A stretch of DNA of 64,000 nucleotides from Schmidtea nova (lineage: Eukaryota), in assembly GCA_044892505.1 (NCBI GenBank), contig CM097882.1, forward strand, positions 394,568,001 to 394,632,000. The letters run 5' to 3'. Made by a program: the position numbers and the translations under genes. The notes beneath the pieces were generated by a model. The model was not told where the DNA came from. It did not search any database and was given only the letters and a program-made list of their open reading frames with translations. This document shows positions 10,230 to 60,935 of the stretch, piece after piece (position 1 is the stretch's first letter; the number at the start of each line of letters is the position of its first letter).

Positions 10230-10318
10230 TATGAAATGTGTCAATATTAAAATAATAATATTGTTTTAATATTAACAAGTAAAAATGTTGAGCGTTGTTT
10301 TTCAATATAATTTGCATT

Positions 10319-11500
10319 ATGAGTGAACAGACTTTTACTGGCGACCACGCAAAAGTGGAAACAATTCAATCAGTTACAAGACAACAACGGAAACTCATCT
10401 TAGAGTCACTTCCGAAACAAGTACAAGATATCTTGAATTTTAATGTCAGGAAATTCAATGGAAGAAATACAGCAGAAGCAGAACTGTGGATGAAAGATAT
10501 CGAAGATTGGCTTATGATGAACGAGTTGAGTCTATTAAGCATATTTGATTTATTATTGTCAGAAGAAGCTGGTATATTATGGAATGATTATAAAATTCCA
10601 GATATTACTGATAAAGAGGCAAAAGAATGGTTCAGTGACACATTCACAAAGAAAAGGTCGATCACTGATAGAATATATGATTTAGCAAGAGTTGAACAAG
10701 AAAAACAATGAAAGATTTGCAACTTTTGAAATTAGAATAAAAAAATTACTTGATGATATCTTCGATTGTGGATTATCCAGAGAAGAAATTGTGAGAAATA
10801 TTGTTGCCAATAGGGTCCACAATGAACGGTTAAAGGAGAATTTTGTTTCTAATGCCAAAATGTCAAGAGAAGAAATGCGAACATTAGCAAAGGTATTTGA
10901 ATCAAACGATAACACGGAAAGAAACGTGCGTATTGAAGAAATTCAAGCAGTGGATAGAAGGTCATATGCAAATGCGGTTCGAGAACGAAATTCTCAGTGG
11001 GAGCATAAAAACAAACCAAAAGCAATAGTTCAAAATAACAGAGTATTTGAACCAAACCATCAGCGCAATATAACATATCAAAATAAGCTATTTAATAGTA
11101 GTAAACCTATATCAGAAGATCAGAGAGACAGAAAAACGAATGAATATGAAGAAAGAAGACAATTACCAACCGTATCGATGAAGCATATTGCAAGGAGACT
11201 TTATAATAGATGTTGTGGATTGCCAGAGTCGAAAGAAGAGAAGTTGAAACCAGGCCAGTGTTTCTGCTGCAAGAAGAGCAATCATTTACGATTTCAGTGT
11301 CCTTTGAAAGATAGATGCTTGATTTGTGGCAAAATCGGACACACGTTTAGAGACTGCCATGTGATTAAGAAGAATTTCGAAAGGAAACAACACCAAGTAT
11401 ATTGTATACACGATGAAGAACAAGATGATTCAGAAATAATTAATGAACCCCTTTTACATGATGTAGAGTATCAAAAAACCAACGCGACCCTGACGTACAC
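10319..11500 (+). pseudogene. gypsy gag (frameshift at ~10700), two CCHC knuckles
   Basis: Contains RKFNG...AELWMKDIE, CFCCKKSNHLRFQC and CLICGKIGHTFRDC. Confidence 0.88.
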
Positions 11501-11589
11501 ATTTCGTCGATGGGCTCGAGTCAATAGGACAATCAAGAAATCGAAATGGAGTTATGAAGGATGTGATGTATATGAAGGAAGATGGTAGG

Positions 11590-14500
11590 AATTAGAGTAG
11601 AATTATTCTAAATGAAGTAGAAGTTGATATGTTGTGGGATTCTGGTGCGTCAATTAGCGTAATAAGTGAAGATTATTGGAAACGTATTGGCTATCCGCCA
11701 TTGATAAGTAGCAAAATAGTTTTGAGTGGTGTATTTTCGAAAGAAAAAGAAATGCCATTAGGAAGTATAAAGGTTAATGCGAAATGGAACAAAAAGTCTA
11801 AAAATTTTGATATTGTTGTTGCGAAGAAGACATGTCCAGATTTTATAGGCGGTGTAGACACCATGAAGCAGTTCGGTCTAGAATTGAAAGAGGTAAATAA
11901 TATTGAAGCTTCGTTAACAAAATTAACATTCACAAATGAAGAGAGAAGAGATAAGGCTCTACAATATATTAAATGCGAGAATAATTCATCACTAGGTAAA
12001 ATTATTTCAGACTTTAGCGATATTTTCATGGCATCGCGATTCAATCTTGGCCATACACGTTTAATAGAACACGAAATAAAAACAACAGGACCGCCAATAT
12101 TACAGAATCCACGCAGACAACCAATGCAATTAGAAACGAAAATTGACGAATTAGTATCAAACTTATTGGAGGCAGGCGTTATTAGAAGATGCTAGAGTCC
12201 TTGGAATTCACCTTTAGTGATTGTTGGAAAGAAGGATGGTTCGATCCGCATGTGTTTGGATTTTCGATGATTGAATTCAGTAACGGAAAAATTTTCGTTT
12301 CCAATGCCCGATATGCAGTTATTACTGGATTGTTTAAGTAAATCAAAGATATTTACAGCAATTGATCTAGGACAAGCGTACTACCAAGTCGAATTGCAGA
12401 AGGATTCACAAAATAAGACATCGTTTAGTACTAAGGAAGGACAATTCTGTTTTAATCGTCTACCTTTTGGGTTATCGACGGCACCAGCAACTTTTCAAAG
12501 ATTAATGCATAAAATACTGGAAGGGGTTATTTTCAAAGGAGTTTTTGTTTATCTGGATGATATACTAGTTTACGCAGAAAATCAAATTGATCACGATAAA
12601 CTGTTGTTGGAGGTATTAACACTGATAAGAAACACAGGCTTGAGAATTAACCCGGAAAAGTGCTCGTTCAATAAGGCGGAAATCAACTTTATTGGCCATA
12701 CAGTCAGTGTTGAAGGTGTTCAGACAAATAAAAAAAAAGCGAAATTGAAAATGCAGCAGTATCAGAATGTGTATCACAACTCAGGGCGTTTTTAGGACTC
12801 ACAAACTATTACCGTCGATTTATAAAAAATTATGCAAAGATTGCAGCACCGTTATATGCAGCAACATCAGGTGGTGAAAAGAAAGTTATATGGTCAGAAG
12901 AATGTAACATTAGTTTTAATAACTTAAAGAAAGCGTTATGTGAAGCACCGATTTTAGAATTTCCGAGATCAGATCGAAAGTTTATCATTGATACAGAAGC
13001 AAGTTTCGGAGCTGTAGGAGCAGTATTAAGCCAGATTAATGAAGAAGGCAGAGAAGTCGTCATAGCATGCGCATCAATACATCTGACGACTCACGAAATG
13101 GGTTATTGTGTAACAAGAAAAGAATTATTAGCACTCTATGAGTTCATTGTATATTTCAAACAGCATTTATATGGTAAAGAATTCGTCGCAAGAACCGATC
13201 ACAAAGCTTTAACGTTCATGAAGGACACAAAGAAGCCAATTAGCCCTCAATTTCAAACTTGGATGGCTAATTTGTCGGAGTATAATTTCGAGTTACAGTA
13301 CAGAAAAGGAGAAGATCATGGAAATGCTGATGGCTTATCTAGAATAAAAAATAACTTGTGCAGTCAATGCCAAACGAAACATAATGACGCAAAAGAAAAA
13401 AAATCGAAGATAAGATACATAAATAGTTTACAAGAAAATCCAAATATTCTAGAAATTATCAGAGTTAAGCAAATGGAAGACGCAAATTTAAGAGAACTTA
13501 TAAAATATTTGAAAGATGAGATTGTCAGGTTCCAAACTTTGTGGAACAAAGTTATTGTTTCAAACATATTAAGGAACTGCAGATAAACGAAGGGTTGTTA
13601 TCAATTGAAATAGCTAACAAAATAGTTGTTATAGTTCCAGAGAATTACGCGGAAACATTGGTTAATTTTATGCATAAGGAATTATGTCATTTAGGTAGCA
13701 AGAAAACTGGAAGTTATATGCAAGATTTTTTTATTGGCCTAATATGAATCAGGATATCAAAGAGATTATCAATAAATGCAAAATTTGTGCCAAGAGGAAA
13801 ATAAAACAAGGAAGAACAAAGAAGATTTTATTACCAAGAACAGGGGAACGATTCCTTCAGCAGATCGTTGTTGACATTGCGCATATGGAAAAGACGAAAG
13901 GGAATAAGAAATATGTGATTGTAATTATAGATAGATTTAGTAAACTTGTGAGTTTAATGGCAACTTCAAAACAAGACGAAAACACAATCGTTAATGTAAT
14001 TTTGAATAACTGGATATACTGATATGAAAAGCCAGAAAGCATACTGACAGATATAGGTCGGGTTTTTGAAGGAACAATAATTCGAGAATGGATGAACAAG
14101 TTTGGAATAAAGCAAGAGTTTAGTTCACCTTACCAACATCAATCTAATGGTTTGGCAGAACGTACGATAAGAACAGTTAGAGATATGATGAGTACATCTT
14201 TGAAAAGAGAACGTAATGAGAATAACTGGGCCGAGATATTACCGAGAATTGAATTTGTCTCAATGCGACGAAACAAAGTACAACAAATTTCTCATCTTTT
14301 GAAATAGTCTACGGTAGGAAAATTAATTTGTTTTCTAGTCCAGATTATGTACAGCAAATGAAAGATGAGGTACTTCATACGACAAAATAAAATTTAGATA
14401 AAGCCGCTACTTCTATGCAAGAAAGAGACATAAACAAACGAGGAACAAGGCTCTTCAAGGTGGGAGAGAGAGTATTAGTAAGAATTGAGCCAAACAAACG

Positions 14501-36531: not shown

Positions 36532-39500
36532 CAGGCCCAGAACCCAGCCCGATGCAACTTTCTGTTAAGCGCTTTTTATAGGAAATTATGTCATAAAAAA
36601 ATTCAAATTTCACAGTAAAGTATTATAATTTTATTATTAAAAATATTTACTGAATAATTAAACATTAATTCATAAAAAAAATAAATAGAAATCTGATATA
36701 TATATATATATATATATAAATTAGAAAACCACAATGTTTCATTTAAAATTTTATTTTTCTTGCTTTTATGGAAGCAAATTCATCCAATACATCATTAATT
36801 TTGATTTTGTCACAGATATCGTTTTCAATAGCAATCAAAGACAGGTCAACTAGTCTTTCTTGAGAAATGGTTGATCGTAAATAATTCTTATTTAGTTTAA
36901 GTCTGGAAAATGATCTTTCGCCAGCTGCTACTGAGACTGTTAGTGTTAATAATATTCTCACAGATACAACTATATTTGGAAATATATCAAATAAATCATT
37001 TGAATAAATATACTGCAATATATCTAATGGATCAAAACTATTAAGTTGAGTTATGGTGTCTTTAAATATACACAGTTCGTTACATAATTCTGAAGAACTT
37101 ATATCTATATCTTCACCATCAGTTAACACATTATGTAAATCTGTACATTTATTTCTTAGTATCTCATTATCCAAATTATAAATTTCATTAAAATTTATGA
37201 AAAATTGAAACTTTTCGGCATGACTATTCATAAGTTCAAATCTTTCGACTATTGAGTTAATTGCACTGTCAACAATTTGAAGAAAAAATGAAATTTTATA
37301 GTTTTTTTCCGGGTCTGTCGGACTTTCATCTCGACATTCGTAGTTAAACATACGTTTTTTACGCCTACGTAATGGATTTTCTTTAAATTGAGGAGCTATG
37401 TCAATATCATGTGCCAAAATTGTAGCTTTTTTAAGTATATTATTAAAATTTTCATCTAAACGAAATTCTTTAAAATAAGTTACTAAATTATTTAAACTAT
37501 TTGTTGATTCATTTAGGTTGGTACTTGAAAATTGAAACATCTTGCTCACAACATTAATCTTGCTTAAAATGTCGTACCAAATTATCAGCGAACAAACAAA
37601 TTCGTAGTCAAGCTTCAATGCCAAAGATTTAGCTTCAGATTTTGTGTTGTTGTCATTTCTGTCATTATCATGGATGGCAAGTAAAGCGTCTAAATAATCA
37701 CCAATATTGTTTTTTAATGGGCTAACAGCATCAATTCTTGATTTCCATCATGTATCCAATAAAGGTTTAAGCGTTATTTTGCTATATTGTTTTAAAACAT
37801 CCCACCGTTTTGTGGAAGCACTAAAAAAATTATATACTTTTTGTATAATGCCAAAAAAAATTATAGTTTCTGTATTAACTTTAGCAGCATTACATACTAC
37901 TAGATTCAATGTGTGAGCTGCGCATGGTACACAAATTGCTCGAGGGTTCTTATCCAAAATGCGTTTTTGAACACTCTGTGTTTACCACGCATGTTAGAGC
38001 CATTATCATAGCCCTGTCCACGTAAGTTTTTTAAATTTATATTTAAATCTTCTAACTTAGCAACTATGCTTTTAAACAAACCTTCATCAGTAGAATCAGC
38101 TATTTCTACGAAACCCAAAAAATGTTCTTCTACAGTAATTTGATTGCTTTCGTTTTTATGGACAAATCTGATAATAATAGTCATTTGTTCAGTGTGACTG
38201 ATATCAGGAGTGCAATCTAATATTATTGAAAAATATTTGGCATTTGTCACCATCTGGACAATAGCGTCGACTATTTTCTTTGAAATTAAGGATATTATTT
38301 CGTTTTGAATATTTTTTCCTAAATAATGCACTGTGTCCTTTTGAGTATTCTGAATTTTTGCGAGATGGTTTTCCATAACCATATCAAATTTAGAGAATAG
38401 TTCAACTAATTTTAAGAAATTACCATTGTTATTTTGGAAAATAATATCTGACGAGCCTCGAAGAGCTAAATTTTGTTTAGCGAGATATTTTATTATTTCA
38501 ACAATTCGTTCTAACACACCGCGCCAATGTCGTTTTTATCTTTCACATACTTTTTCAAGTTCACTATCTATTGTGCTAAACTTTTCTAATCGTTTTTTTA
38601 CATCAACCCACTTTATAAATGATGTTAAATGGGATTTAGTTACTTCATGACTACTCAGAGTTTTTGATAAATTTTGCCAATTTGAGTAACCATCTGTGGT
38701 CAAAGAACTTGTTCCACCTGCAAATAATTTGCAACATGAACAAAAAACACAATTTATAGAACATGAATATATAAGCTATGTTCGCGAAACAGTATCTTTA
38801 TTTGCTATCTTACGATAGTAATAGTTATTACTAAAACTACGACCACAATCGTCTCGAGGATATAATTTTTGTTCTATCGGTATCATCGAACCTTGCTCAA
38901 TAATAATTTCCCGAAGTTTGTCATTTATAACTTTGGGCCAAGTAGCTGGATCATTTGATTTAAATGAAATCAATACTTCATTTTCCCTCACTGTTTCACT
39001 TACTGTTCCTGAAGTTTTTTGGGGTGATAAATGTAAATTAGTTTCACATTCTGTGGTCAACGTGATAGCGATATTGTTATATCCTTCGTGTTGATGTGGT
39101 AAAGTTAAGGAAGGTGAATCAATAACTTTTTGGACTGTAAATGAATGTAATTTTTTCGGTCCATTACTGTTTGCAGAAATTTCATCCGTTTTTTTAAAGA
39201 ATTTGTTTATTTGACCTGTTAACTTCTTTTGTTCCGTATCCCTTATCGCTTTTCTTTTGCGGTACTCTGCTCCAGATAATTTTTTTCTCCATTTTTTAGT
39301 TATACTGAAAAGAATTTAAAATTAAATATAAAAATGGTGGTGAGCGTCACCTCAATTAATATTTAGGATTCTTTATTGAAAAAATAATAAACTCTAAGTA
39401 AAAATAAAAAAATCACTATAATATACTTACATTCACAAAAATTTTGTTATTCAAGAAATTACACTTTTTAAACTTTTTTATTAAATATTTCACACAACAA

Positions 39501-49291: not shown

Positions 49292-49753
49292 GGTATTATG
49301 ATCAGTACAAAATGNNNNNNNNNNNNNNNNNNNNNNNNNNNNNNNNNNNNNNNNNNNNNNNNNNNNNNNNNNNNNNNNNNNNNNNNNNNNNNNNNNNNNN
49401 NNNNNNNNNNNNNNNNNNNNNNNNNNNNNNNNNNNNNNNNNNNNNNNNNNNNNNNNNNNNNNNNNNNNNNNNNNNNNNNNNNNNNNNNNNNNNNNNNNNN
49501 NNNNNNNNNNNNNNNNNNNNNNNNNNNNNNNNTTTTATTTTCTCTTCTTCGCGCCTGTGTGCGCAGTGGTTAATTTTGAAAGAATGATAATTTTGGTTAT
49601 CACGTCTGTGTGCGTGGTCGTATGTTTGTTTATCGCGTCTGTGTGCGCGTGGGTAATTTGGTTGTTGTTTTTGTGAAATTGATTTTAATTTTTATTTAGA
49701 TTTGGTTTTTAATTGAATTTCAAAAAAATCTAGGTGTTTAAATAATCAGTAAC

Positions 49754-50533
49754 ATGTTGGTTTTTCAAAAGGGAGTTTCGCTCAAATTAATGGTGACATG
49801 GTCTGAAAGTCAACTTTGTGATTTGGAGGAATTTGGCATTGAGAATGAGGTTCCAGTTGATTATAATTCCTTTATTTGTGTTAGTGATGAAAATACGTCA
49901 ACGGATAACGAGAAAGAAGAGGCGTCGGAAGATTATTCAAACATAGACGAATCAGGCAATGATATTAATAATTACGAAAATGACGATCTCAAGCAGCCTT
50001 GTGGAGATAATTCAACACAAGAGCAGGTTTTTAAGAGTTTAAAGGAAATAATAACTAAAACCAGTAAATCGCTTAAAAGAAAACTTGATGACGTCGATGG
50101 AAACGATAAAGATGTGAAACGAACGAAACTCGATGAAGACAAAACCGAATGTAAGTGTTTTAGAGTTATCCTGAGAAAAGATGCCCTGTATGTGCTGGCG
50201 AGTGAGATGAGGCCATTTGATATCGATGAGAGGAATTACAAAAGAAAACTTTTATTGGCAATTCTGTTACAAGGAGCGTCGAAGAGCGAAGGAGAAAATT
50301 GTTACTCGCTGGAATTAATTGGATTAATCAAATATTCTTGTCAGAGTTCCACGGCGGAATCAGAGAGCTGGTTGTCGATTAAATCCGATCTTTCTCATAT
50401 ATCGAGTGATCACATAATCAATATTTCTGGCGAATCAACTGACAACAAGTCCTTAGAAACAATCTCTATCATATATCATGTAATAAATCTTCTGATTTCG
50501 GTCATTTCGGTCAACAAAGAATTGTCAAACTAA
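49754..50533 (+). CDS. 259-aa ORF in the 5' LTR (acidic N-half, bipartite NLS-like KRK-x10-KRTK)
   Basis: The ORF is intact and its translation is identical to the 3' LTR copy. The frame continues past the TAA to 50821. Confidence 0.6.
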   Translation: MLVFQKGVSLKLMVTWSESQLCDLEEFGIENEVPVDYNSFICVSDENTSTDNEKEEASEDYSNIDESGNDINNYENDDLKQPCGDNSTQEQVFKSLKEIITKTSKSLKRKLDDVDGNDKDVKRTKLDEDKTECKCFRVILRKDALYVLASEMRPFDIDERNYKRKLLLAILLQGASKSEGENCYSLELIGLIKYSCQSSTAESESWLSIKSDLSHISSDHIINISGESTDNKSLETISIIYHVINLLISVISVNKELSN

Positions 50534-50914
50534 CATTCTTGGTTTGTGCCATTTTTGGACATATTCCGGCGATTGACGGCACAAATATTGACTTACTGTG
50601 CATTACACGGGTTGAATGGAATTATCAATGCTGTTTATTTAGTTACGGAAACTAATAAAGATTGTTCTTTGGTCGTTCAATTGATGATTTTACATGGTAG
50701 CAGAGCGTGGTTCCCACCGGGGGGCCACGCACACTCTGGAAATCTGTTAGTATACATTTTTATTAAAGATTCTATTATGTTTTTTGTCAATTTTTATAAA
50801 TGGGTTAAATTTGTAATTTGAGTATGGACCAACATTCCCTCCCAAGCGCGTTTTGAATGGGAAGTGAGGTTAGGGGATAAGAGGCGAAAGTTGAAGGTGA
50901 TTAATGAAAGGTAA

Positions 50915-53900
50915 GTGAAAGTTGGAATGGCTTGGCCACCGGATATTGTGAAAGACGGCTGCTATGGGCCCCAGCATTCTTTTAAATTCCGGGATAACAT
51001 TGGTAGGGAAGGTGCTCTTAAGAGGTATATGCATATGGTTCGACAAGCGAGACAGGAAAGGCAAATAATTTTAAAAGCTTTAACGGGAAAACCCATCACT
51101 TTAGAAGTCGCATGCAGCGATACAATTGAAGGCGTGAAAGCTAAAAATAAACAAATATCATTTAATGAATCAAATAGACAAAGAGGAAAAATGGTGTCAC
51201 CTGCTTATGAAGCAACATGTATAGAAAAAGATAATTCGGTAGTTAAAGGTGAAAAGGTTAGTAGGGGCATTGGCTATGACAACGAAGATTTTTTAATGAA
51301 TATCGGCCGGAAAATGTTGCAACAAGATAAAAGTTTGAAAGGCTTAGAACCTTTTGTAGGAATAAGGGGAGATAAAGGTAATTATAAAAAGTTCTATAAT
51401 CAAATTATTAAAAATATTAAATTGGGTAATCATGAAGACAGGGTGAATATGAATAAAATAGGGGAATTATTGAGTTTTTATTCAATAGCAAGTGGTGATG
51501 AAAGGACAAGTTTAAAGGATAATAGTTCGCGAGTGAAAGAAAAGGAAACGGAGTCCACTTTACATTTTGTTTTGCGATTGAGACGTGGAATACAGATTTT
51601 TGTTAAGACTCTAACAGGTAAAACCGTAACACTGGAAGTTGAACCGAGGGACTCTATTGAGAAAGTAAAAGCAAGGATCCAAGAGAAAGAGGGAATCCCG
51701 CCTGATCAACAGAGATTGATATTTGCAGGTAAACAATTGGTAGGCGAAAGAATCCTGTCAGATTACCACATTCTAAAGGGGTCTACTATTCATCTGGCAC
51801 TGAGATTGTGTGGAGGGAATGATGAAGAGGAGGAATTAGAGGAAGGATTGAGAAAGAAGAGGAGTGTCAAATATAGATTGACGAAATTAAGAAACAGATG
51901 GATGAATGATATGTTGGCAGAAGATGCAACACATGTCCTTGATGAATATCAGGAAGCTATGGAAAGTGCCATAGAGAGTTTTGAAAGATTGGTGGATATT
52001 AGTAAAAGATTAGGAAGGTCAGATACAACATCGGGGCTAGAAGCGGATTTACAAGAGATAGAAAATAAGAACGAGAAGGTGGAAGAGTTGATTTCGTCAA
52101 AGGCCAATCAGTCAGTTAGGTCGGATGACAGTAATACAATTAAAGAGGTAAATGGAAACGAAACGAAGAAAAGACTAGAAAAGATGCAGAAGATACGGAT
52201 CCAGATATTTGATGGACACCAGAAAGAATATGAAAGTTGGAAAGCTGCTTTCCATACTTGTGTTGATAGTGCCCATGGAGATGATGATGAAAAGATGTTA
52301 CACCTTCGATCCTATCTGAAAGGTGAACCGCTAAGGTTGATCGAAAATTTAGGATTTTCTGCAACGGGTTACAAAATGGCAAAGGAAAAGCTTGATAAAA
52401 GATATGGCGGGGAAAAACGAAATTACTTAGCTGCTCTGGAAGATATCGACAGGTTCCGACCCGTTCGGGAGAATGAAATGCTGGAAATAGAGGCATTTGT
52501 TGGACTATTGGAAACGCTAGAAGTTAGAATTATTAATAATAGACGAGAGGGCGAAATGAACAATAGTTACTTATTGAAGAGATGCCTGCAAAAGCTACCC
52601 AGTTCGCTGCTATACAAGTGGAAGAAAGATTTTAAGGAGGGAAAGGTAACCGAATGTATCCAAGATTTGAGAAATTGGTTACAAGATGAAGTCGAGCTGT
52701 TAAGATCAACAAGAGAAACCCTTTATGGAGTCGGTGATGGCAATAGAAGAAACGATTGGAAGAGGCAGGATGGACCGTCAAGAGAACTTGGGAATCTAAG
52801 GCAAGGGAACCGGACACTTGTTGGGCAAGTAGCAGATTGGAAGGAAGACAAGACAAACATACCAAGAGACGGATTGTTGAGCACAAAGTTGAAGTGTTGG
52901 AAATGCAAGGAAAATCATTACTTGGATCAATGCAGAGAATTCAAAGAAATGAACCCCGCAATGCGACGTAAAGCAGTAGGAGACTGGAAGTTATGCTTTA
53001 ATTGTTTAAAGTCTAATCATGTAGCGTCGGAATGTCGAAAGGCTTCATTCTGTACTAGAGAGGGGTGTAAGCTGAAACACAGTAACCTACTGCATGTGGA
53101 TCAGTCAGAGTCCAAAAGGAAGGAAAACACATTGATGTCGGCTACTAAAGATGAATTATTAAAAAAGGAGCGAAAATACCTAAGCTTGAGGACCATACCG
53201 ATCTACCTTGAGCATGGAGCGAAGAAAATTAAAGTAAATGCGCTGTTAGACGATGCAAGCTCCATTAGCTACATAAGTCAGAGTATTGCAGACGAGTTGG
53301 GTCTAAAGGGGAAAGAGGAAATAGTTCCTGTGAGCGTCATCGGAGGTCATATTCAAAATATGACAACAAGAATAGTCACGATGACGTTGATAAGTTACGA
53401 TCAGAAGATGAGGAAAAAGTTTACAGCTGCAGCGGTGAAGAGTGTAACCGGGGAAATGCGAGTGATAAATTGGGCAAAGGAAAAATGGAAATGGGAACAT
53501 CTAAAGGATATACGGTTTCCAATGCTTGATGAACGACAAGTGGTGCAAGTTCTTATTGGAGCTGATTATTTAGGTTTGCAAAGAGCGCTGAAGGAAGTGG
53601 ATGGAAAGATGGACGAACCAATCGCTAGATTAATTCCGCTTGGTTGGACCTGTGTAGGTGGAAATACGTTGGGCGTGTCATTGACCCACCAAACCAATTT
53701 TGTTCAAACGTATTTATCCAAGGACGAGGAGTTAGTTGGACAGGTAAAGTTGTTCTGGGAAATCGAGAACTTAAAGGAGAACCCGGTGCTCTTGACCAAA
53801 AGGGATCGTGAAGTTATTAAAATTACGGAAGAAAAGATGGTTAACAGAGGAATGTTTTATCAAGTGAGTTTACCGTGGAAATCTGGAAAAGAAGAGTTAT

Positions 53901-56900
53901 CAAATAATACACAAATGGCAATGAAACGCCTAGAAAGTTTAAAGCAAAAATTAGATAAAAATCAAGAGCTGAAGAAGGAATATGAAAGAATTTTGAAGGA
54001 TCATGAAAGTAAGGATTACATTAGGAGGTTAAGTGAACAAGAAAAGGTGGGAACGAAGTGGATGTTACCTCATTTTCCCATTGTAAGAAAGGAAAAAGAA
54101 ACGTCGAAGGTCCGAATTGTATTTGATGCTGCAGCAAAATGTAATGGAAAGTGTTTGAATGATGTTTTGGAAACGGGACCGAAATTGCAAAATGATCTTT
54201 TCGAAATTTTTTTAAGATTCAGACGGTTTAAGGTAGCCATAGTAAGCGATATCGCCGAAATGTATCTACAAATAAGAATAGCAGAAGAAGACAGACCTTA
54301 CTTACGATTTTTGTGGAAAGAGGGTGAGAAGATTGTGCAATTTGAATTTTCAAGACTAGTTTTCGGGTTGAATACGTCCCCGTTTCTTGCACAATATGTA
54401 ACCCAACAACACGCGAGAAGATATGAAAAAAGTTACGCAAGAGCGGCGGAGACCATAATAAAATCTACATACATGGATGACAGCATTGACTCAGTAGAGA
54501 CGGAGGAAGAAGCGCTAATTCTTAAAGAGGATCTGAAGTTACTGTGGGCAGAAGCAGGAATGAGGGCAAGAAAGTGGATGTCAAACTCGATTAAAGTAAT
54601 GGAAACAATTCCGATCGAAGAACAAGCCAAGTCGTTAACAATAGAAGAAAATAGAACAGTCACGATGAAGACATTGGGGATGTACTGGCTTGCAACGGAC
54701 GATTTATTGAGATTTGAAGGACGAACGGCAGACAATGTGAAAATCACGAAAAGAATGTTATTAAGTTGGATAGCACGTATCTTTGACCCTTTGGGAATGC
54801 TTAGTGCATTCACAATTGTTGGCAAATGCCTAATGCAAGAAGCGTGGATGATGGGAAGCAAGTGGGATGATGTTTTACCCCCAGAATTACAAAAAAGAGC
54901 GAGATGTTGGATGGAAGAATGTGAATTATTGAATCGAGTAATGATTCCAAGGAGATTATTGGGGAAGCAAAGCAACCCGTGGCGCTTACATGTATTTGTT
55001 GATGCGTCTAGTACTGCCTATGCAGCGGTTTGTTACCTTAGGGAAGAAGAGAGCGCCAAGGTTAAAATGAAATTTGTTGCGGCACGAGCAAAAGTAGCTC
55101 CAGTTAAAGTAATCACCATTCCACGATTGGAATTGATGGGCGCCTGTTTGGGTCTAAAGTTAGCTAAGAAGGTTGGAAAGGCGTTACAATATGAATTGAA
55201 AAATGTCATGTTTTGGACTGATAGTCAAGATACCTTGCACTGGATTCGTCATCATTCAAGACTATGGAAAACATTTGTTGCCAACCGAGTGAGTACCATT
55301 CAGAACGAGACAGATGCTGAACAATGGCGTTACGTTCCTACCAAGAGCAACCCAGCAGATATAGCTACTCGGGGAATGTCGGCATCAGATCATATGGGAG
55401 ATAATATGTGGTGGGAAGGACCACCTTTTTTAAAACACTTTGAAAGAAATTGGCCAAAAACGAAATTAGATATACAGGTAAATGAAAATAGAGAAAGAAA
55501 GCAAGCGACATTTGTCATAAATTTAGAAGAAGAGCAACCTGGAAAATATCAAGTAAACTGTTGGCAACCTGAAACCTATTCATCGTGGAAAAGATTGCTC
55601 AGAGTAAGAGCATGGGTGCATAGATTCGCAAATAATTGTCGAAACAAAAAGGAACTCCGAAGTGGGGAGTTAACAACCGACGAAATCAAAAAGATTGAAG
55701 CGATAGTAATTCGAGAGGAGCAAAATGAGATCTTTAAGGATGAGATACGAGAGTTAAAAGACGGAAGACCATTGTATAAAAAGAGCAAAATACTGAGTTT
55801 GAATCCAATGCTCGATGAAGAAGGATTACTCAGGAGTAACAGTCGAATCATAAATGCAGAGTTCATGACATTAGAAGCAAGATACCCGATAATATTAAGT
55901 GCAAAACGATGGGTGACTAGACTGATAATAAGAAAATATCATCAAGACAGAGATCACTGCGCCGGAACAAATCATTTATTAAGCGATCTGCAGGAAAGGT
56001 TTTGGATAACGCAACCTAAAAGAGAAATCAAGAAGGTGGAATTTGAATGCCTAATCTGTAAAAAGAGACGAGCTTCTGGACAGTCCCAGAAGATGGCTCC
56101 ACTACCTGCATTTCGATTGACGGAACCATTTAGACCATTTGGAAAAGTGGGGGTTGATTTTGCGGGCCCATTCTTAACAATCCAGGGCCGAGGAAAAGCG
56201 AGGCTAAAGAGATATGTGTGTTTGTTTACATGTTTACAAACTAGAGCAGTGCATCTGGAATTAGTGTACGGGCTAACAACGGATTCATTCATACAAGCTT
56301 TAATAAGATTCATTGGGCGACGAGGAAAACCAGGGTTGATGTTATCAGACAACGGTACTAATTTCGTTGGAGCAACGGGGGAATTGAAAGATGTGATAAT
56401 CGATGGTTATAAGATAACGAAGGAGTTGACAGCTCGGGAGATAAGATGGGTGTTTAATCCGCCAGCCGGGCCACATTTCGGAGGGGTTTATGAAGCGTTA
56501 ATAAAATCGATGAAAAGAGCTATGTCAGCAATAGTTGGCAATGCAGATATTACAGATGAAGAGATGCTGACAGTAGTAGCACGGATTGAAGGATTTTTAA
56601 ATGCCAGACCGTTGACGACAAAGGGGGATGATGAAAAAGGACTTGAAGTACTGACACCTAACCATTTTTTAAAGCCCAGATGGTCAGAAATCGAGACTAA
56701 TGAAATAGAAACTAATAAGAAAACTAATATTTAGCGGCGATGGAAAAGGACGGTAGAGTTAACCAATCAAGTATGGAATAGATGGAAAAGAGAACTTGTG
56801 CCGATATGGATAAGCAGAGCCAAGTGGAGATCAGATCAAGAAGAGTTAACAGCAGGTCAGTTAGTGTGGATTTTAGATAAAGAAAGCGAAAGTGTTGGAG

Positions 56901-57082
56901 AATGGCCATTGGGGAAGATTACAGAGTTAATGATGGGAAGCGATGGACGGACACGGGTAGTAAAGATGTGGAGTAAAGGGAAAGAGGTGATTCGCCCAAT
57001 ATCTCAGCTTTGCCCCTTGGAAGTAGAAGCAGAGAAGCAAGAAAATTTTAAAGAAAAAAAGGGGTTGGCAGAAAAGGAGTAA
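50915..57082 (+). CDS. BEL/Pao Gag-Pol polyprotein with ubiquitin/Hsp90-derived leader; one in-frame TAG at 56732-56734
   Basis: Has a DUF1759-like gag ([16 protein letters not shown]), three Cys-His knuckles, protease ALLDDAS, RT YMDD, RNase H LHVFVDAS, integrase H-H-C-C, GVDFAGP, SDNGTNF and GGVYE. The C-terminal domain continues in frame to 57082. Confidence 0.95.
51263..51541 (+). other. Captured Hsp90 middle-domain fragment in the polyprotein leader
   Basis: [42 protein letters not shown] aligns ungapped with cytosolic Hsp90 [49 protein letters not shown] (about 36/57 by manual alignment to the remembered human sequence). It is preceded by [17 protein letters not shown], versus SEDLPLNISREMLQQSK. 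Confidence 0.9.
51590..51817 (+). other. Complete ubiquitin unit fused to Gag; partial ubiquitin pieces at 51059-51145 and 51551-51589
   Basis: [34 protein letters not shown] matches canonical ubiquitin at 59/76 positions by manual count. Confidence 0.97.
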
Positions 57083-57357
57083 ACAAGGAGAGTTGACGAG
57101 GAGTCAAAAGGGGGGAATGTTCGTCTGTGTGTGCATTTTTATTTTCTCTTCTTCGCGCCTGTGTGCGCAGTGGTTAATTTTGAAAGAATGATAATTTTGG
57201 TTATCACGTCTGTGTGCGTGGTCGTATGTTTGTTTATCGCGTCTGTGTGCGCGTGGGTAATTTGGTTGTTGTTTTTGTGAAATTGATTTTAATTTTTATT
57301 TAGATTTGGTTTTTAATTGAATTTCAAAAAAATCTAGGTGTTTAAATAATCAGTAAC

Positions 57358-58137
57358 ATGTTGGTTTTTCAAAAGGGAGTTTCGCTCAAATTAATGGTGA
57401 CATGGTCTGAAAGTCAACTTTGTGATTTGGAGGAATTTGGCATTGAGAATGAGGTTCCAGTTGATTATAATTCCTTTATTTGTGTTAGTGATGAAAATAC
57501 GTCAACGGATAACGAGAAAGAAGAGGCGTCGGAAGATTATTCAAACATAGACGAATCAGGCAATGATATTAATAATTACGAAAATGACGATCTCAAGCAG
57601 CCTTGTGGAGATAATTCAACACAAGAGCAGGTTTTTAAGAGTTTAAAGGAAATAATAACTAAAACCAGTAAATCGCTTAAAAGAAAACTTGATGACGTCG
57701 ATGGAAACGATAAAGATGTGAAACGAACGAAACTCGATGAAGACAAAACCGAATGTAAGTGTTTTAGAGTTATCCTGAGAAAAGATGCCCTGTATGTGCT
57801 GGCGAGTGAGATGAGGCCATTTGATATCGATGAGAGGAATTACAAAAGAAAACTTTTATTGGCAATTCTGTTACAAGGAGCGTCGAAGAGCGAAGGAGAA
57901 AATTGTTACTCGCTGGAATTAATTGGATTAATCAAATATTCTTGTCAGAGTTCCACGGCGGAATCAGAGAGCTGGTTGTCGATTAAATCCGATCTTTCTC
58001 ATATATCGAGTGATCACATAATCAATATTTCTGGCGAATCAACTGACAACAAGTCCTTAGAAACAATCTCTATCATATATCATGTAATAAATCTTCTGAT
58101 TTCGGTCATTTCGGTCAACAAAGAATTGTCAAACTAA
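57358..58137 (+). CDS. 259-aa ORF in the 3' LTR
   Basis: Translation is identical to 49754-50533. Confidence 0.6.
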   Translation: MLVFQKGVSLKLMVTWSESQLCDLEEFGIENEVPVDYNSFICVSDENTSTDNEKEEASEDYSNIDESGNDINNYENDDLKQPCGDNSTQEQVFKSLKEIITKTSKSLKRKLDDVDGNDKDVKRTKLDEDKTECKCFRVILRKDALYVLASEMRPFDIDERNYKRKLLLAILLQGASKSEGENCYSLELIGLIKYSCQSSTAESESWLSIKSDLSHISSDHIINISGESTDNKSLETISIIYHVINLLISVISVNKELSN

Positions 58138-60529
58138 CATTCTTGGTTTGTGCCATTTTTGGACATATTCCGGCGATTGACGGCACAAATATTGACTTAC
58201 TGTGCATTACACGGGTTGAATGGAATTATCAATGCTGTTTATTTAGTTACGGAAACTAATAAAGATTTTTCTTTGGTCNNNNNNNNNNNNNNNNNNNNNN
58301 NNNNNNNNNNNNNNNNNNNNNNNNNNNNNNNNNNNNNNNNNNNNNNNNNNNNNNNNNNNNNNNNNNNNNNNNNNNNNNNNNNNNNNNNNNNNNNNNNNNN
58401 NNNNNNNNNNNNNNNNNNNNNNNNNNNNNNNNNNNNNNNNNNNNNNNNNNNNNNNNNNNNNNNNNNNNNNNNNNNNNNNNNNNNNNNNNNNNNNNNNNNN
58501 NNNNNNNNNNNNNNNNNNNNNNNNNNNNNNNNNNNNNNNNNNNNNNNNNNNNNNNNNNNNNNNNNNNNNNNNNNNNNNNNNNNNNNNNNNNNNNNNNNNN
58601 NNNNNNNNNNNNNNNNNNNNNNNNNNNNNNNNNNNNNNNNNNNNNNNNNNNNNNNNNNNNNNNNNNNNNNNNNNNNNNNNNNNNNNNNNNNNNNNNNNNN
58701 NNNAAAATAAGCCATGCAGCAAAATGTTCACTTAGTAAAAATTTCTAGCAAAAACTTTTGTTGTTATTTAATAATTATTTAATTATTAATTATTGCTACT
58801 GAGGAGAAACCTCCATTTTATATTATTATTCATATAAGCTTAAATTGAATTTTTTAATTGAGAAAAGTTGAAAAAATTCAAAGTCTAAAATTCATAAAAA
58901 AGTCTAAAAATCAATATGCCAAAACTAGACAAGATATTGTGTTTCTTTTCCATTTAAAAGTTAATAACGTTAATAATTGTTATTTTACGATACCGTATAT
59001 GAAGCATTAAAATGAAATTCCAGAACTTTTATTCTAATATCTTTCTGTTATACAATCTGAGGTGTTTTAATATCGTTATTCGAGTCTAGCACTTTGTCAA
59101 ATATCCGATGGCAGCCTCCAGTCAGTGTATCATTGACTGTAAACGTTACACAAAAGTGGATGATTTGAATTTTGTTATGTATCGAAATCGAGGTGGTATA
59201 TCGCATAACATGCATTTATTATTATAATTAGACGCTTTTAAATCGTAATAATGGTAGCGAAAATATTCGAACTTTCTTGTCGACCAAACGAAACGACAAT
59301 TGTCTCATTTGAATAATATTATAATGAAGAATATGTTATAATTTAATTTGCTTTTATAATTAGAATAAATAATTGAATGATACTGAACGAGTCCTTTACT
59401 TGGGTTTGACTGTTTTGTTAATTAATTGTTTTAATTTGTTGCGGAGTTATACAGTTACTATTCTGACATTGTTTATGAAAATCTTGTCGTTGCAATTCCA
59501 AACATTTCTATTGTAATCCAGGCAGTGGTGGTTCTTTATTGATAGGTGTACCCGAACCCTCGAGTCTAGGGGACATGATTACAAATGCTAGGACTCACTT
59601 GGCAGCTGGACAATTTGAATGAATGAAATACGTTACAAAATGATTTGAGAAAGCTCAAATAAATATTAAGAATAGGTTTGTATAAGAAATAAAATTCAAT
59701 TTAAAATTTAAAATTTAAATTTTTTTTAACCAAGAAAATGTTACATTTTATATTTAATATATATTTTAATTTCTTTTTAATATTTATCGCCGCGCCGTCT
59801 AAGTTGCCAATTCCACGATTCTCACGGCAGTTGGAGGACGTTTTCATTGAGTCGTCGATCACTTTCAGGACAGGTTGGAAATCTGGATTAATTTAGAATA
59901 ATTTATTTATGCTTTTAACATTTGATAATCAAAATATGATTAATACAAATTTGATTAATACAATTGAAGAAAAAACACAGATAATTTAAAAGCGGATGGA
60001 CTGAAAATTTGCATTTATAGCAAATTCGATAGGTCTTCTAACATGTTTGATTTGTAATGACATTGTCTAATAATAAAAAATTAAACATTTGTTGGGGTAT
60101 GCCTGAACCGACACAAAATAAAATACATGTTCAAATCAATAAAAACATAAAAATCTAAAAAGTAATAATTAAAATACAATAATTAAAAAACAATTTTGAA
60201 AATTAAAAATAAAGATTTAGCGTTTGAAACTGAAATGGGTGGATGCCAAATGATCAGGCGTATTCAAAATCTAAAAAGAGTCCACAGAAAGAAATAATTG
60301 TAAGATTAACAAATTAATTAAGAGTTAATTGGCCAATGGGAAACCCGAGCCAATGGGAAACCCGATCAGTGTGAAAAACCCGGACGATCAAGAAGATAAT
60401 TTAATCAACTCAAAGAAAATTGATTTTATGGAAAACCTCAGAACCCGATTGATGGTAAAGTAATTATCTGAGGAAAATAATCTATTTCTAAATTTGAAAT
60501 GAAGTAGATAGTAGGGAAGACCCAGGTAA

Positions 60530-60589: not shown

Positions 60590-60688
60590 GTTGCCGGGAA
60601 AATATTAAAGAAAATTATTTTGAATTTTAATTTTAAACGTATAATCAATTAATAAAACAAAATCAATTTAGAATAATTATGATAATAA

Positions 60689-60935
60689 AATTAATTATTT
60701 TTATTTTAATAAAAAACTAATCGATTTTAAATATTTGGTAATAAATTTAACACAAAAAATATTTGTTATTAAAAATTTAAATTAAGCAAAACAAAAAATA
60801 AAATAAAATAAAAAATTAATTATTTTTATTTATTAAAAAACTAATAAATTTTAAATAATTGGTAATAAATTTAACACAAAAAATAATTGTTATTAAAAAT
60901 TTAAATTAACCAAAACAAAAAATAAAATAAAATGA
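60689..60935 (+). repeat. Two-copy ~125-bp AT-rich tandem duplication
   Basis: TTGGTAATAAATTTAACACAAAAAATA..TGTTATTAAAAATTTAAATTAA occurs twice. Confidence 0.8.

Follow-up and report, generated by a model that had tools for sequence, protein, structure and literature searches.

Ubiquitin fused in frame to Gag-Pol in a BEL/Pao retrotransposon clade: a candidate cut site for host deubiquitinases

Anatomy of the element

The 64-kb stretch of Schmidtea nova DNA analysed here (assembly GCA_044892505.1, contig CM097882.1, positions 394,568,001 to 394,632,000 of the forward strand; hereafter the window) contains a nearly intact and very recently inserted long terminal repeat (LTR) retrotransposon of the BEL/Pao type, referred to below as Q, in which a ubiquitin (Ub) unit precedes Gag-Pol in the same reading frame. 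All features of Q are located on the + strand. The 5′ LTR (49514–50694, ending in ACA) and the 3′ LTR (57118–58298, starting with TG) are about 1.18 kb long and form a direct repeat with an offset of 7604, in which 1142 of the 1143 comparable positions are identical (49533–50675 against 57137–58279). The start of the 5′ LTR is inferred from the 3′ copy, positions 49514–49532 falling within a run of N, as do the last 20 bases of the 3′ LTR. The two N runs (49315–49532 and 58279–58703) cover exactly the outer ends of both LTRs together with their flanks, and therefore the target-site duplication and the insertion site of Q are not readable. The primer-binding site (PBS; 50695–50712), which starts with TGG, adjoins the end of the 5′ LTR, and the polypurine tract (PPT; 57106–57117) is a purine run directly before the TG of the 3′ LTR. 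The 18-mer of the PBS is also found after the LTR of a related element on contig L001, and its first 12 bases are found in a further relative, L005. Each LTR of Q carries an identical open frame of 259 codons (49754–50533 and 57358–58137), which falls into no Pfam family, is missing from the protein collection and does not resemble the open frame that directly follows the LTR of L001. There is neither a second copy of Q nor a solo LTR within the window.

The single gene of Q occupies 50927–57082, opening with the first ATG and closing with the end of pol, and the open frame that begins at this ATG is about 1,900 codons long. The order of domains is leader, Ub, a DUF1759 Gag, two zinc knuckles, aspartic protease, reverse transcriptase (RT), Peptidase_A17 region, integrase and DUF5641; the Pfam profiles met along the frame are PF00240 (ubiquitin), DUF1759, aspartyl protease, RVT_1, Peptidase_A17 (Pao) and Integrase_H2C2, with DUF5641 at the end of pol. 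Gag (51818–53035) begins with a conserved N-terminal motif and includes DUF1759 (52208–52639) and the zinc knuckles (52895–52933 and 52994–53035). The Pol domains (53231–56074) comprise the protease (53231–53389), RT (54230–54565), the Peptidase_A17 region (54746–55225) and the zinc domain of the integrase (55919–56074). The gene is broken once, by a single in-frame stop in pol, an interruption of a kind not present in the relatives; DUF5641 downstream of this stop is still well recognised (E 2e-21). The features of a BEL/Pao element that are readable in this sequence are all found in Q, namely the LTR pair, the PBS and PPT, the gag-pol domain order and the grouping of its Pol with BEL/Pao polyproteins. 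An exact look-up of the Q polyprotein in the protein collection gave no record.

Composition of the leader

The part of the frame that precedes Gag is a mosaic, which consists of 44 unassigned residues, Ub positions 1–31, about 40 further unassigned residues, a piece of HSP90, Ub positions 63–76 and finally a complete Ub unit (1–76) joined to Gag. The original prediction, made from the letters of this DNA, had described a single open frame with a Ub fragment, an insert, a Ub tail, a full Ub and Gag-Pol, and alignments to Pfam and the PDB confirm this layout from the ATG at 50927 onwards. The N-terminal Ub fragment (51059–51154), given as 1–29 in the original prediction, matches positions ~1–31, its best ungapped register being at offset 0 to the canonical unit. 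The insert is present as described, but its HSP90 content had gone unrecognised. Two changes in the N-terminal fragment, N25G and Q31K, are also present in the Ub of P0139, the closest relative.

The HSP90 piece (51263–51547) derives from the middle domain of cytosolic HSP90 and corresponds to residues 386–488 of human HSP90-alpha, with a gap of about nine residues. It matches PF00183 with E 3.4e-16 (59.7 bits against a cut-off of 24.4; profile positions 184–282 of 518), and in a phmmer search against the PDB it matches human HSP90-alpha with E ~1e-21, roughly half of the residues being identical. It contains about 95 residues of the middle domain alone, the N-terminal ATPase and C-terminal dimerisation domains being absent; this part of the leader is a fragment and not a chaperone gene.

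The HSP90 piece is followed by a remnant of a Ub C-terminal tail (51548–51589, Ub 63–76), which ends in RRG, position 75 being Arg and not Gly, and then by the full Ub unit (51590–51817), whose 76 residues end in LRLCGG and are fused directly to Gag. This unit matches PF00240 with E 1.7e-30 (105 bits against a cut-off of 25.4; profile positions 1–71 of 72) and Ub chains in the PDB with E ~1e-32. Measured against the canonical Ub, taken here as the commonest unit in the polyubiquitins returned by the searches, 59 of the 76 residues are identical, and Leu8, Ile44, His68, six lysines (positions 6, 11, 27, 33, 48 and 63) and the terminal Gly-Gly (GG) are retained, all of which agrees with the original prediction. 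The 17 changes include K29R, V70A and R74C, and ten of them are located within the last 26 residues. A single-sequence AlphaFold2 model of the Ub region was unusable (mean pLDDT 34); a β-grasp fold is therefore predicted for this unit from its 78% identity to solved ubiquitin.

Residues 208–297 of the open frame align with residues 63–152 of linear di- and polyubiquitin chains in the PDB over 90 residues, without a gap and across the boundary between units. A protein search with the leader was uninformative, its matches being dominated by giant polyubiquitins. The gap-free alignment of tail plus unit points to a polyubiquitin template and, at the level of sequence comparison, shows that the Ub unit of Q came from a host polyubiquitin transcript. 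The proposal of such a capture, first based on the head-to-tail junction, is thereby upheld, and a tail remnant is present in a second element, P0207, as well. The end of the HSP90 piece and the beginning of Ub meet around a shared Lys-Glu, a joint that resembles a template switch at microhomology. It may be that an older Ub of the family was split in Q and then partly renewed from a host polyubiquitin transcript.

The absence of stops from the leader, also claimed before, holds under comparison with other frames and with shuffled sequences. The 221 codons before the full Ub unit contain no stop, against 22 and 31 stops in the other two frames, and none of 5000 shuffles was stop-free.

Relatives and age of the ubiquitin-Gag joint

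All relatives of Q are metagenome contigs, which come from different assemblies. A search with the Gag part returned 18 BEL/Pao polyproteins, and in the closest three, P0121, P0122 and P0123 (34–38% identity), the homologous Gag start follows directly on a Ub-like end; PF05380 is present in every homologue found. Contigs L001–L004, read directly, contain complete or partial Ub-like units. The frames of L001 (P0123, 2,576 residues), which has LTRs of its own, and of L004 (P0289, 2,000 residues) are unbroken; L002, which is cut by the end of its contig, has one in-frame stop in the Ub-like unit, and L003 is broken twice, by a frameshift in its Ub-like unit and once more in pol. A full scan with Gag only covered 1.8 billion representatives and yielded 9,380 matches. 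The best 150 of these were examined for upstream extension, and among them Ub ends at the junction in all proteins whose sequence continues upstream of Gag (P0139, whose Gag is 57% identical, P0140, P0160, P0185, P0197, P0207 and P0227). A Ub or Ub-like unit thus ends immediately before Gag in Q, P0121, P0122/P0289, P0123, P0139, P0140, P0160, P0185, P0197, P0207 and P0227, so that ten lineages besides Q, on independent contigs, carry a unit which ends exactly at the homologous Gag N-terminus; the junction could be aligned across nine elements. As to whether the fusion is private to this copy, the answer is divided: the Ub-Gag joint recurs in the ten further lineages, whereas the HSP90-containing leader of Q was not found again as such. 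Close relatives without Ub (P0124, P0143, P0150, P0178, P0188, P0189 and P0226) start with Met, which stands a few residues ahead of the same basic motif of Gag.

In a Pol tree of 865 columns, the four full-length Ub-bearing elements group together in 200 of 200 bootstraps against 23 elements without detectable Ub. This tree is preferred to a neighbour-joining tree on the short Gag core, in which the placement of Q was unstable. Judged by these sequences, Q belongs to a BEL/Pao subclade in which Gag-Pol is always encoded directly behind a Ub unit. The earlier suggestion that the family may use Ub is supported by a joint that is conserved across lineages, the full-length ones forming one Pol clade; Ub may then serve the processing, trafficking or destabilisation of Gag, the uses named at the time.

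The Ub-Gag joint is old. Elements that carry it are 53–58% identical in Pol and 26–57% in Gag, and the synonymous sites between their Ub units are saturated (see below); this depth of divergence argues against a young joint. It bears directly on the idea that the leader, Ub included, is a neutral passenger, acquired by template switching onto abundant stress mRNAs and open only because the insertion is young. On the one hand, the LTRs of Q are almost identical, the HSP90 piece contains a deletion and after drift retains about 50% identity with human HSP90, and reverse transcription is known to give rise to captured fragments (PMC6431247). On the other hand, the age of the joint, the conservation of GG and of the fold core, the lack of an own Gag start codon in most members and frames that stay open over hundreds of AT-rich codons all speak against it, and we regard this explanation as very improbable. 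A misassembly that fused a retrotransposon with a host locus for polyubiquitin or HSP90 has a probability close to negligible: runs of N do flank Q, but the leader is enclosed by a matched pair of LTRs, follows the PBS and continues into Gag in a single frame, and the same joint is present in at least 10 independent contigs from different assemblies.

Other searches set the limits of this set. A search from P0139 returned P0139 alone, a scan of JGI metagenome contigs and of viral contigs with the Gag alignment gave no matches, and six other BEL/Pao Gags with long N-terminal extensions contained no recognisable domain and no ubiquitin. P0160, from an ENA contig of 4.4 kb, bears a Ub tail and has a Gag with CCCH-type zinc fingers; a piece of CFAP58 coiled coil at its C-terminal end is possibly another captured host fragment.

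Constraint on the ubiquitin unit

The Ub units of the clade range from 80% (P0197) and 78% (Q) identity with canonical Ub down to 29% (P0123), and their differences are unevenly distributed. Leu73 and Gly76 are invariant (11 of 11 each), as are Ile61 and Thr66 (9 of 9 each); Gly75 is present in 10 of 11 units, positions 72 and 74 are mostly Arg or Lys, and the hydrophobic core positions are either kept or conservatively swapped. The drifting positions are Ile44 (identical in 2/8), His68 (4/9), Val70 (1/11) and Asn60 (0/9). The residue after GG is Asn in Q and Asn, Met, Gln, Gly or Ser in the ten relatives, never Pro. With GG at the joint, a next residue other than proline and tail residues that are conserved in the relatives, the junction has the sequence features expected of a fusion cut by deubiquitinases.

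The changes M1I, E64G and L67I are derived states that recur in several members of the clade, which speaks for a shared origin of the unit, at least in its C-terminal part. Synonymous sites between the units are saturated (pS 0.76–0.92), and pN between Q, L005 and L006 reaches only about 0.2, a pattern compatible with purifying selection on the Ub unit. These comparisons establish the architecture of the Ub-Gag joint, its age and the pattern of constraint on it.

An invariant tail and a fold that is probably kept, combined with a drifting receptor surface, fit a Ub that only has to be cleaved better than a Ub that is read as a signal by receptors. The opposite possibility is that Ub stays uncleaved as an N-terminal domain of Gag, where it could be a degron of the ubiquitin-fusion-degradation route or a docking point for host factors that bind Ub, for example ESCRT or proteasome receptors, and so tune the level or trafficking of Gag. 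Engineered Gag-Ub fusions can replace retroviral late domains, which counts in favour of such a role, as do the presence of Lys48 in 7 of 8 units, the retention of Lys11 and Lys27 or their replacement by Arg, and the less regular tails, position 74 being Cys or Tyr in two members and P0139 ending in EG. However, integral Ub-like domains normally lose their GG end, which is kept here (Gly76 in 11/11, Gly75 in 10/11), and the patch of Ile44, His68 and Val70 that is read by most Ub receptors is the least conserved surface. Moreover, Q is without an env gene, so that budding has no obvious need to be served, and particle assembly would have to tolerate a long and variable leader on the N-terminus of Gag. 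Taken together, we consider an uncleaved Ub rather unlikely.

Start of translation and a conserved leader hairpin

There is no Met in the Ub unit of Q or at its Gag start; the nearest upstream Met is within the HSP90 piece, and the first downstream Met lies within the conserved Gag N-terminal motif. These positions imply that at least part of HSP90, the Ub tail and the Ub unit are translated together with Gag, unless a start other than AUG is used.

Just past the ATG at 50927 the frame runs through a conserved RNA hairpin (50955–50978), which has an invariant loop of 10 nt with the palindrome GGGCCC and a variable stem. A 16-nt island (50959–50974) is identical in L003 and L004, where the flanks cannot be aligned, and the same 10-nt core is present in L001, 15 nt before the Ub-like unit. 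The corresponding hairpins (L004:452–477, L003:115–140 and L001:4233–4258) are all upstream of the (old) Ub. Minimum-energy folds in all three elements put the same 10-nt loop on stems of different sequence, with unremarkable folding energies. Six of the seven stem pairs are changed on both sides, and none of 500 shuffles matched the observed covariation. The hairpin is a candidate kissing-loop dimerisation (or packaging) signal of this BEL/Pao clade, and its position suggests that the first 30-odd codons of the Q frame may be leader RNA. Little is known of the RNA biology of BEL/Pao elements in general, for which the hairpin offers a candidate dimerisation signal. Exact matches to the 16-nt island were obtained at 65 loci, evaluated without the human-gut-labelled contigs L044 and L060; they were mostly GC-rich (median GC 0.56), none encoded a relative, and they were set aside as chance matches.

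It could be argued from this region that the whole leader, including Ub, is untranslated, that Gag is translated from a spliced RNA or begins at an internal or non-AUG codon downstream of Ub, and that the long frame is incidental. A perfect splice-donor-like GGTAAGT (50910–50916) precedes the ATG with which the long frame opens by 11 nt; there are five upstream ATGs, the hairpin is typical of retroviral leaders, and a Met stands right after GG in three relatives. Against this, no AUG occurs in Q after the HSP90 piece until the conserved N-terminal motif of Gag is reached, and the HSP90 piece, both Ub remnants, the Ub unit and Gag share one frame, with no stop where the other frames have 22 and 31. 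In addition, conservation of the Ub protein over saturated synonymous sites requires translation, and an untranslated leader is accordingly judged improbable.

Variable leaders and captured host fragments

The region upstream of Ub differs between the elements and may consist of HSP90 pieces, of kinesin-14 plus Sec24, or of only 16 residues. The short form is seen in P0139 and P0227, where 16 residues are read before Ub; P0139 starts with a Met, and the frame of P0227, which has none, may continue past the end of the contig. The leader of P0197 has 77 residues with no Met at the called start of the frame, and that of L004 has 158 residues. The 149 residues of the P0207 leader include HSP90-alpha 487–554 and a six-residue remnant of a Ub tail, which makes P0207 a second and distant element supporting capture from polyubiquitin.

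The longest leader is that of L001, about 3.4 kb in total. Its frame of 724 leader residues combines a kinesin-14 (Ncd-like) neck and motor piece, a Sec24C/D piece and an AT-rich stretch; the kinesin-14 piece and the Sec24C/D trunk and β-sandwich (together L001:2094–3653; E 1e-109 for the Sec24C/D match) are in frame with the Ub-like unit and Gag. Between the PBS and this main frame there is a further 1.2 kb (L001:881–2093) with open frames of 315 and 50 codons. Shuffle and frame comparisons indicate that the leaders are open far beyond chance in four elements; in L001, 218 codons at 25% GC contain no stop, against 36 and 27 in the other frames.

Q and P0207 belong to distant lineages, and in both a polyubiquitin junction adjoins a part of HSP90; the two parts are neighbours in HSP90 and may overlap. 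The joints between HSP90 and Ub differ between the two, and a weak collinear match between the HSP90 parts is no more than suggestive of an overlap (62 of 2000 shuffles). One old capture and repeated capture of the same abundant stress transcripts would both account for these leaders.

Other features of the window

The window has a high AT content, and remains of other transposons are abundant in it. A series of protease, RT and RNase H with broken frames (10295–13586) belongs to a different type of LTR retrotransposon, whose RT is about 27% identical to that of Q. Two remnants of hAT-type transposases are located at 1036–1875 and 36743–38517, one of them with DUF4371, and downstream of Q a unit of 124 nt is present twice in tandem, with 89% identity between the two (60687–60934).

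Proposed role of the ubiquitin unit

LTR retrotransposons and retroviruses are thought to use their own protease for processing and their own start codon for Gag. Host deubiquitinases cleave linear Ub fusions, as in UBA52, RPS27A and polyubiquitin. With moderate confidence, we propose that the Ub unit of this clade is a host-operated cut site, at which host deubiquitinases would cut after GG and free Gag-Pol from the leader. Ribosomes would start upstream of Ub, and the leader, Ub and Gag-Pol would be made as a single chain; cleavage past GG would then release Gag-Pol with a proper N-terminus, the leader-Ub piece being discarded. In Q, the upstream tail joint, which ends in RRG, should resist cutting, so that the Ub-Gag junction alone would be cut, and the by-product would be a leader-HSP90-Ub protein of about 297 residues. 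Production of Gag would in this way become independent of the content of the leader, and such tolerance would allow host fragments to pile up upstream of Ub. The freed Gag would begin with Asn in Q and with Gln in L004. Both residues are destabilising at the N-terminus in the N-degron pathway; a destabilising Gag N-terminus is not general across the clade.

Several observations weigh against this mechanism. The five short ATGs between the PBS and the ATG at 50927, together with the hairpin just past it, make the beginning of the frame behave like an untranslated leader too, and the true start of the Q frame may be a later Met; the three clade members with a Met right after GG could start Gag directly. 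The start codon, translation of the leader and cleavage in Q are deduced from sequence. Recognition by some deubiquitinases could be weakened by the Cys at position 74 of Q and the Tyr of P0207, and P0139, the closest relative, ends in EG and not in GG. The low pN over saturated pS could in part reflect selection on host Ub genes, if units were captured again. Finally, the relatives are known as metagenome contigs only, and the window holds no second copy of Q.

A host-operated cut site would explain how in-frame fragments of host genes can be carried without loss of element function. The clade seems to have handed its first cut to the host ubiquitin system and to have kept this arrangement through deep divergence, which connects ubiquitin processing with the expression of retroelements in a way that can be tested directly. 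In addition, these natural Ub variants, 29–80% identical to Ub, would show which residues a cleavage-only Ub must keep. An extension of the proposal, which at present appears unlikely, is that the clade is a natural capture-and-express vehicle, in which host cDNA placed between the PBS and Ub is translated and split off as cargo-Ub with a free GG. If this were true, the element would not only tolerate stolen fragments of host proteins but also express them; some of these, such as the HSP90 middle domain seen in two distant lineages, the cargo-binding core of Sec24 and the kinesin-14 motor piece, might then be retained for disturbing the chaperone or transport machinery of the host, or for being conjugated to host proteins by way of the Ub end.

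Comparison with known systems

The literature searched, which did not extend to Repbase notes and subscription journals, gave no account of a retrotransposon with a ubiquitin-Gag fusion, in line with the original prediction, which named no described BEL/Pao family with this layout. The BEL/Pao superfamilies comprise Pao, BEL, Tas, Sinbad, Suzu and Flow, and the metazoan survey that describes them contains no occurrence of ubiquitin (PMC3118150). Q shares with these elements the LTRs, PBS and PPT, a Gag with DUF1759 and zinc knuckles, the order protease-RT-RNase H-integrase, Peptidase_A17 and DUF5641 (PMC3118150), and differs from them in the in-frame Ub unit on the N-terminus of Gag and in the host cDNA fragments of the leader.

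Among host genes, UBA52 (Ub-eL40), RPS27A (Ub-eS31) and polyubiquitin have an N-terminal Ub, a GG joint and removal of Ub by host deubiquitinases, and PDB matches to these fusions were returned by the searches. They are housekeeping genes, whereas in Q the partner is Gag-Pol and Ub is itself extended at its N-terminus. DDI1 and DDI2 have a Ub-like domain N-terminal to a retropepsin-like protease, and thus combine Ub with protein parts derived from retroelements. Each is a host gene, in which the Ub-like domain is integral, has no cleavable GG joint and binds the proteasome; no match to DDI1 or DDI2 appeared in any of the searches made here. Transducing retroviruses and LTR elements (PMC6431247) resemble Q in carrying intron-free fragments of host coding sequence between the LTRs and in frame with Gag. 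However, classical transducers usually lose replication genes and are defective, whereas gag and pol of Q are complete and the cargo is located upstream of the putative cut site.

The closest functional parallel is found in cytopathogenic pestiviruses (BVDV strains such as Osloss), which have independent, often mosaic Ub inserts directly before NS3 (PMC13517609), that is, before a protein that needs a freed N-terminus. These inserts contain one or two units (partial plus complete), stem from host RNA captured by recombination and are cut by a host ubiquitin-specific protease (PMC13517609). The inserts of pestiviruses are sporadic, arise independently in an RNA virus and do not persist, whereas the fusion of Q is inherited by a clade of retrotransposons and stands at the start of the polyprotein. 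If the proposed cleavage is true, this clade would be the first heritable retroelement counterpart of the sporadic pestivirus ubiquitin inserts.

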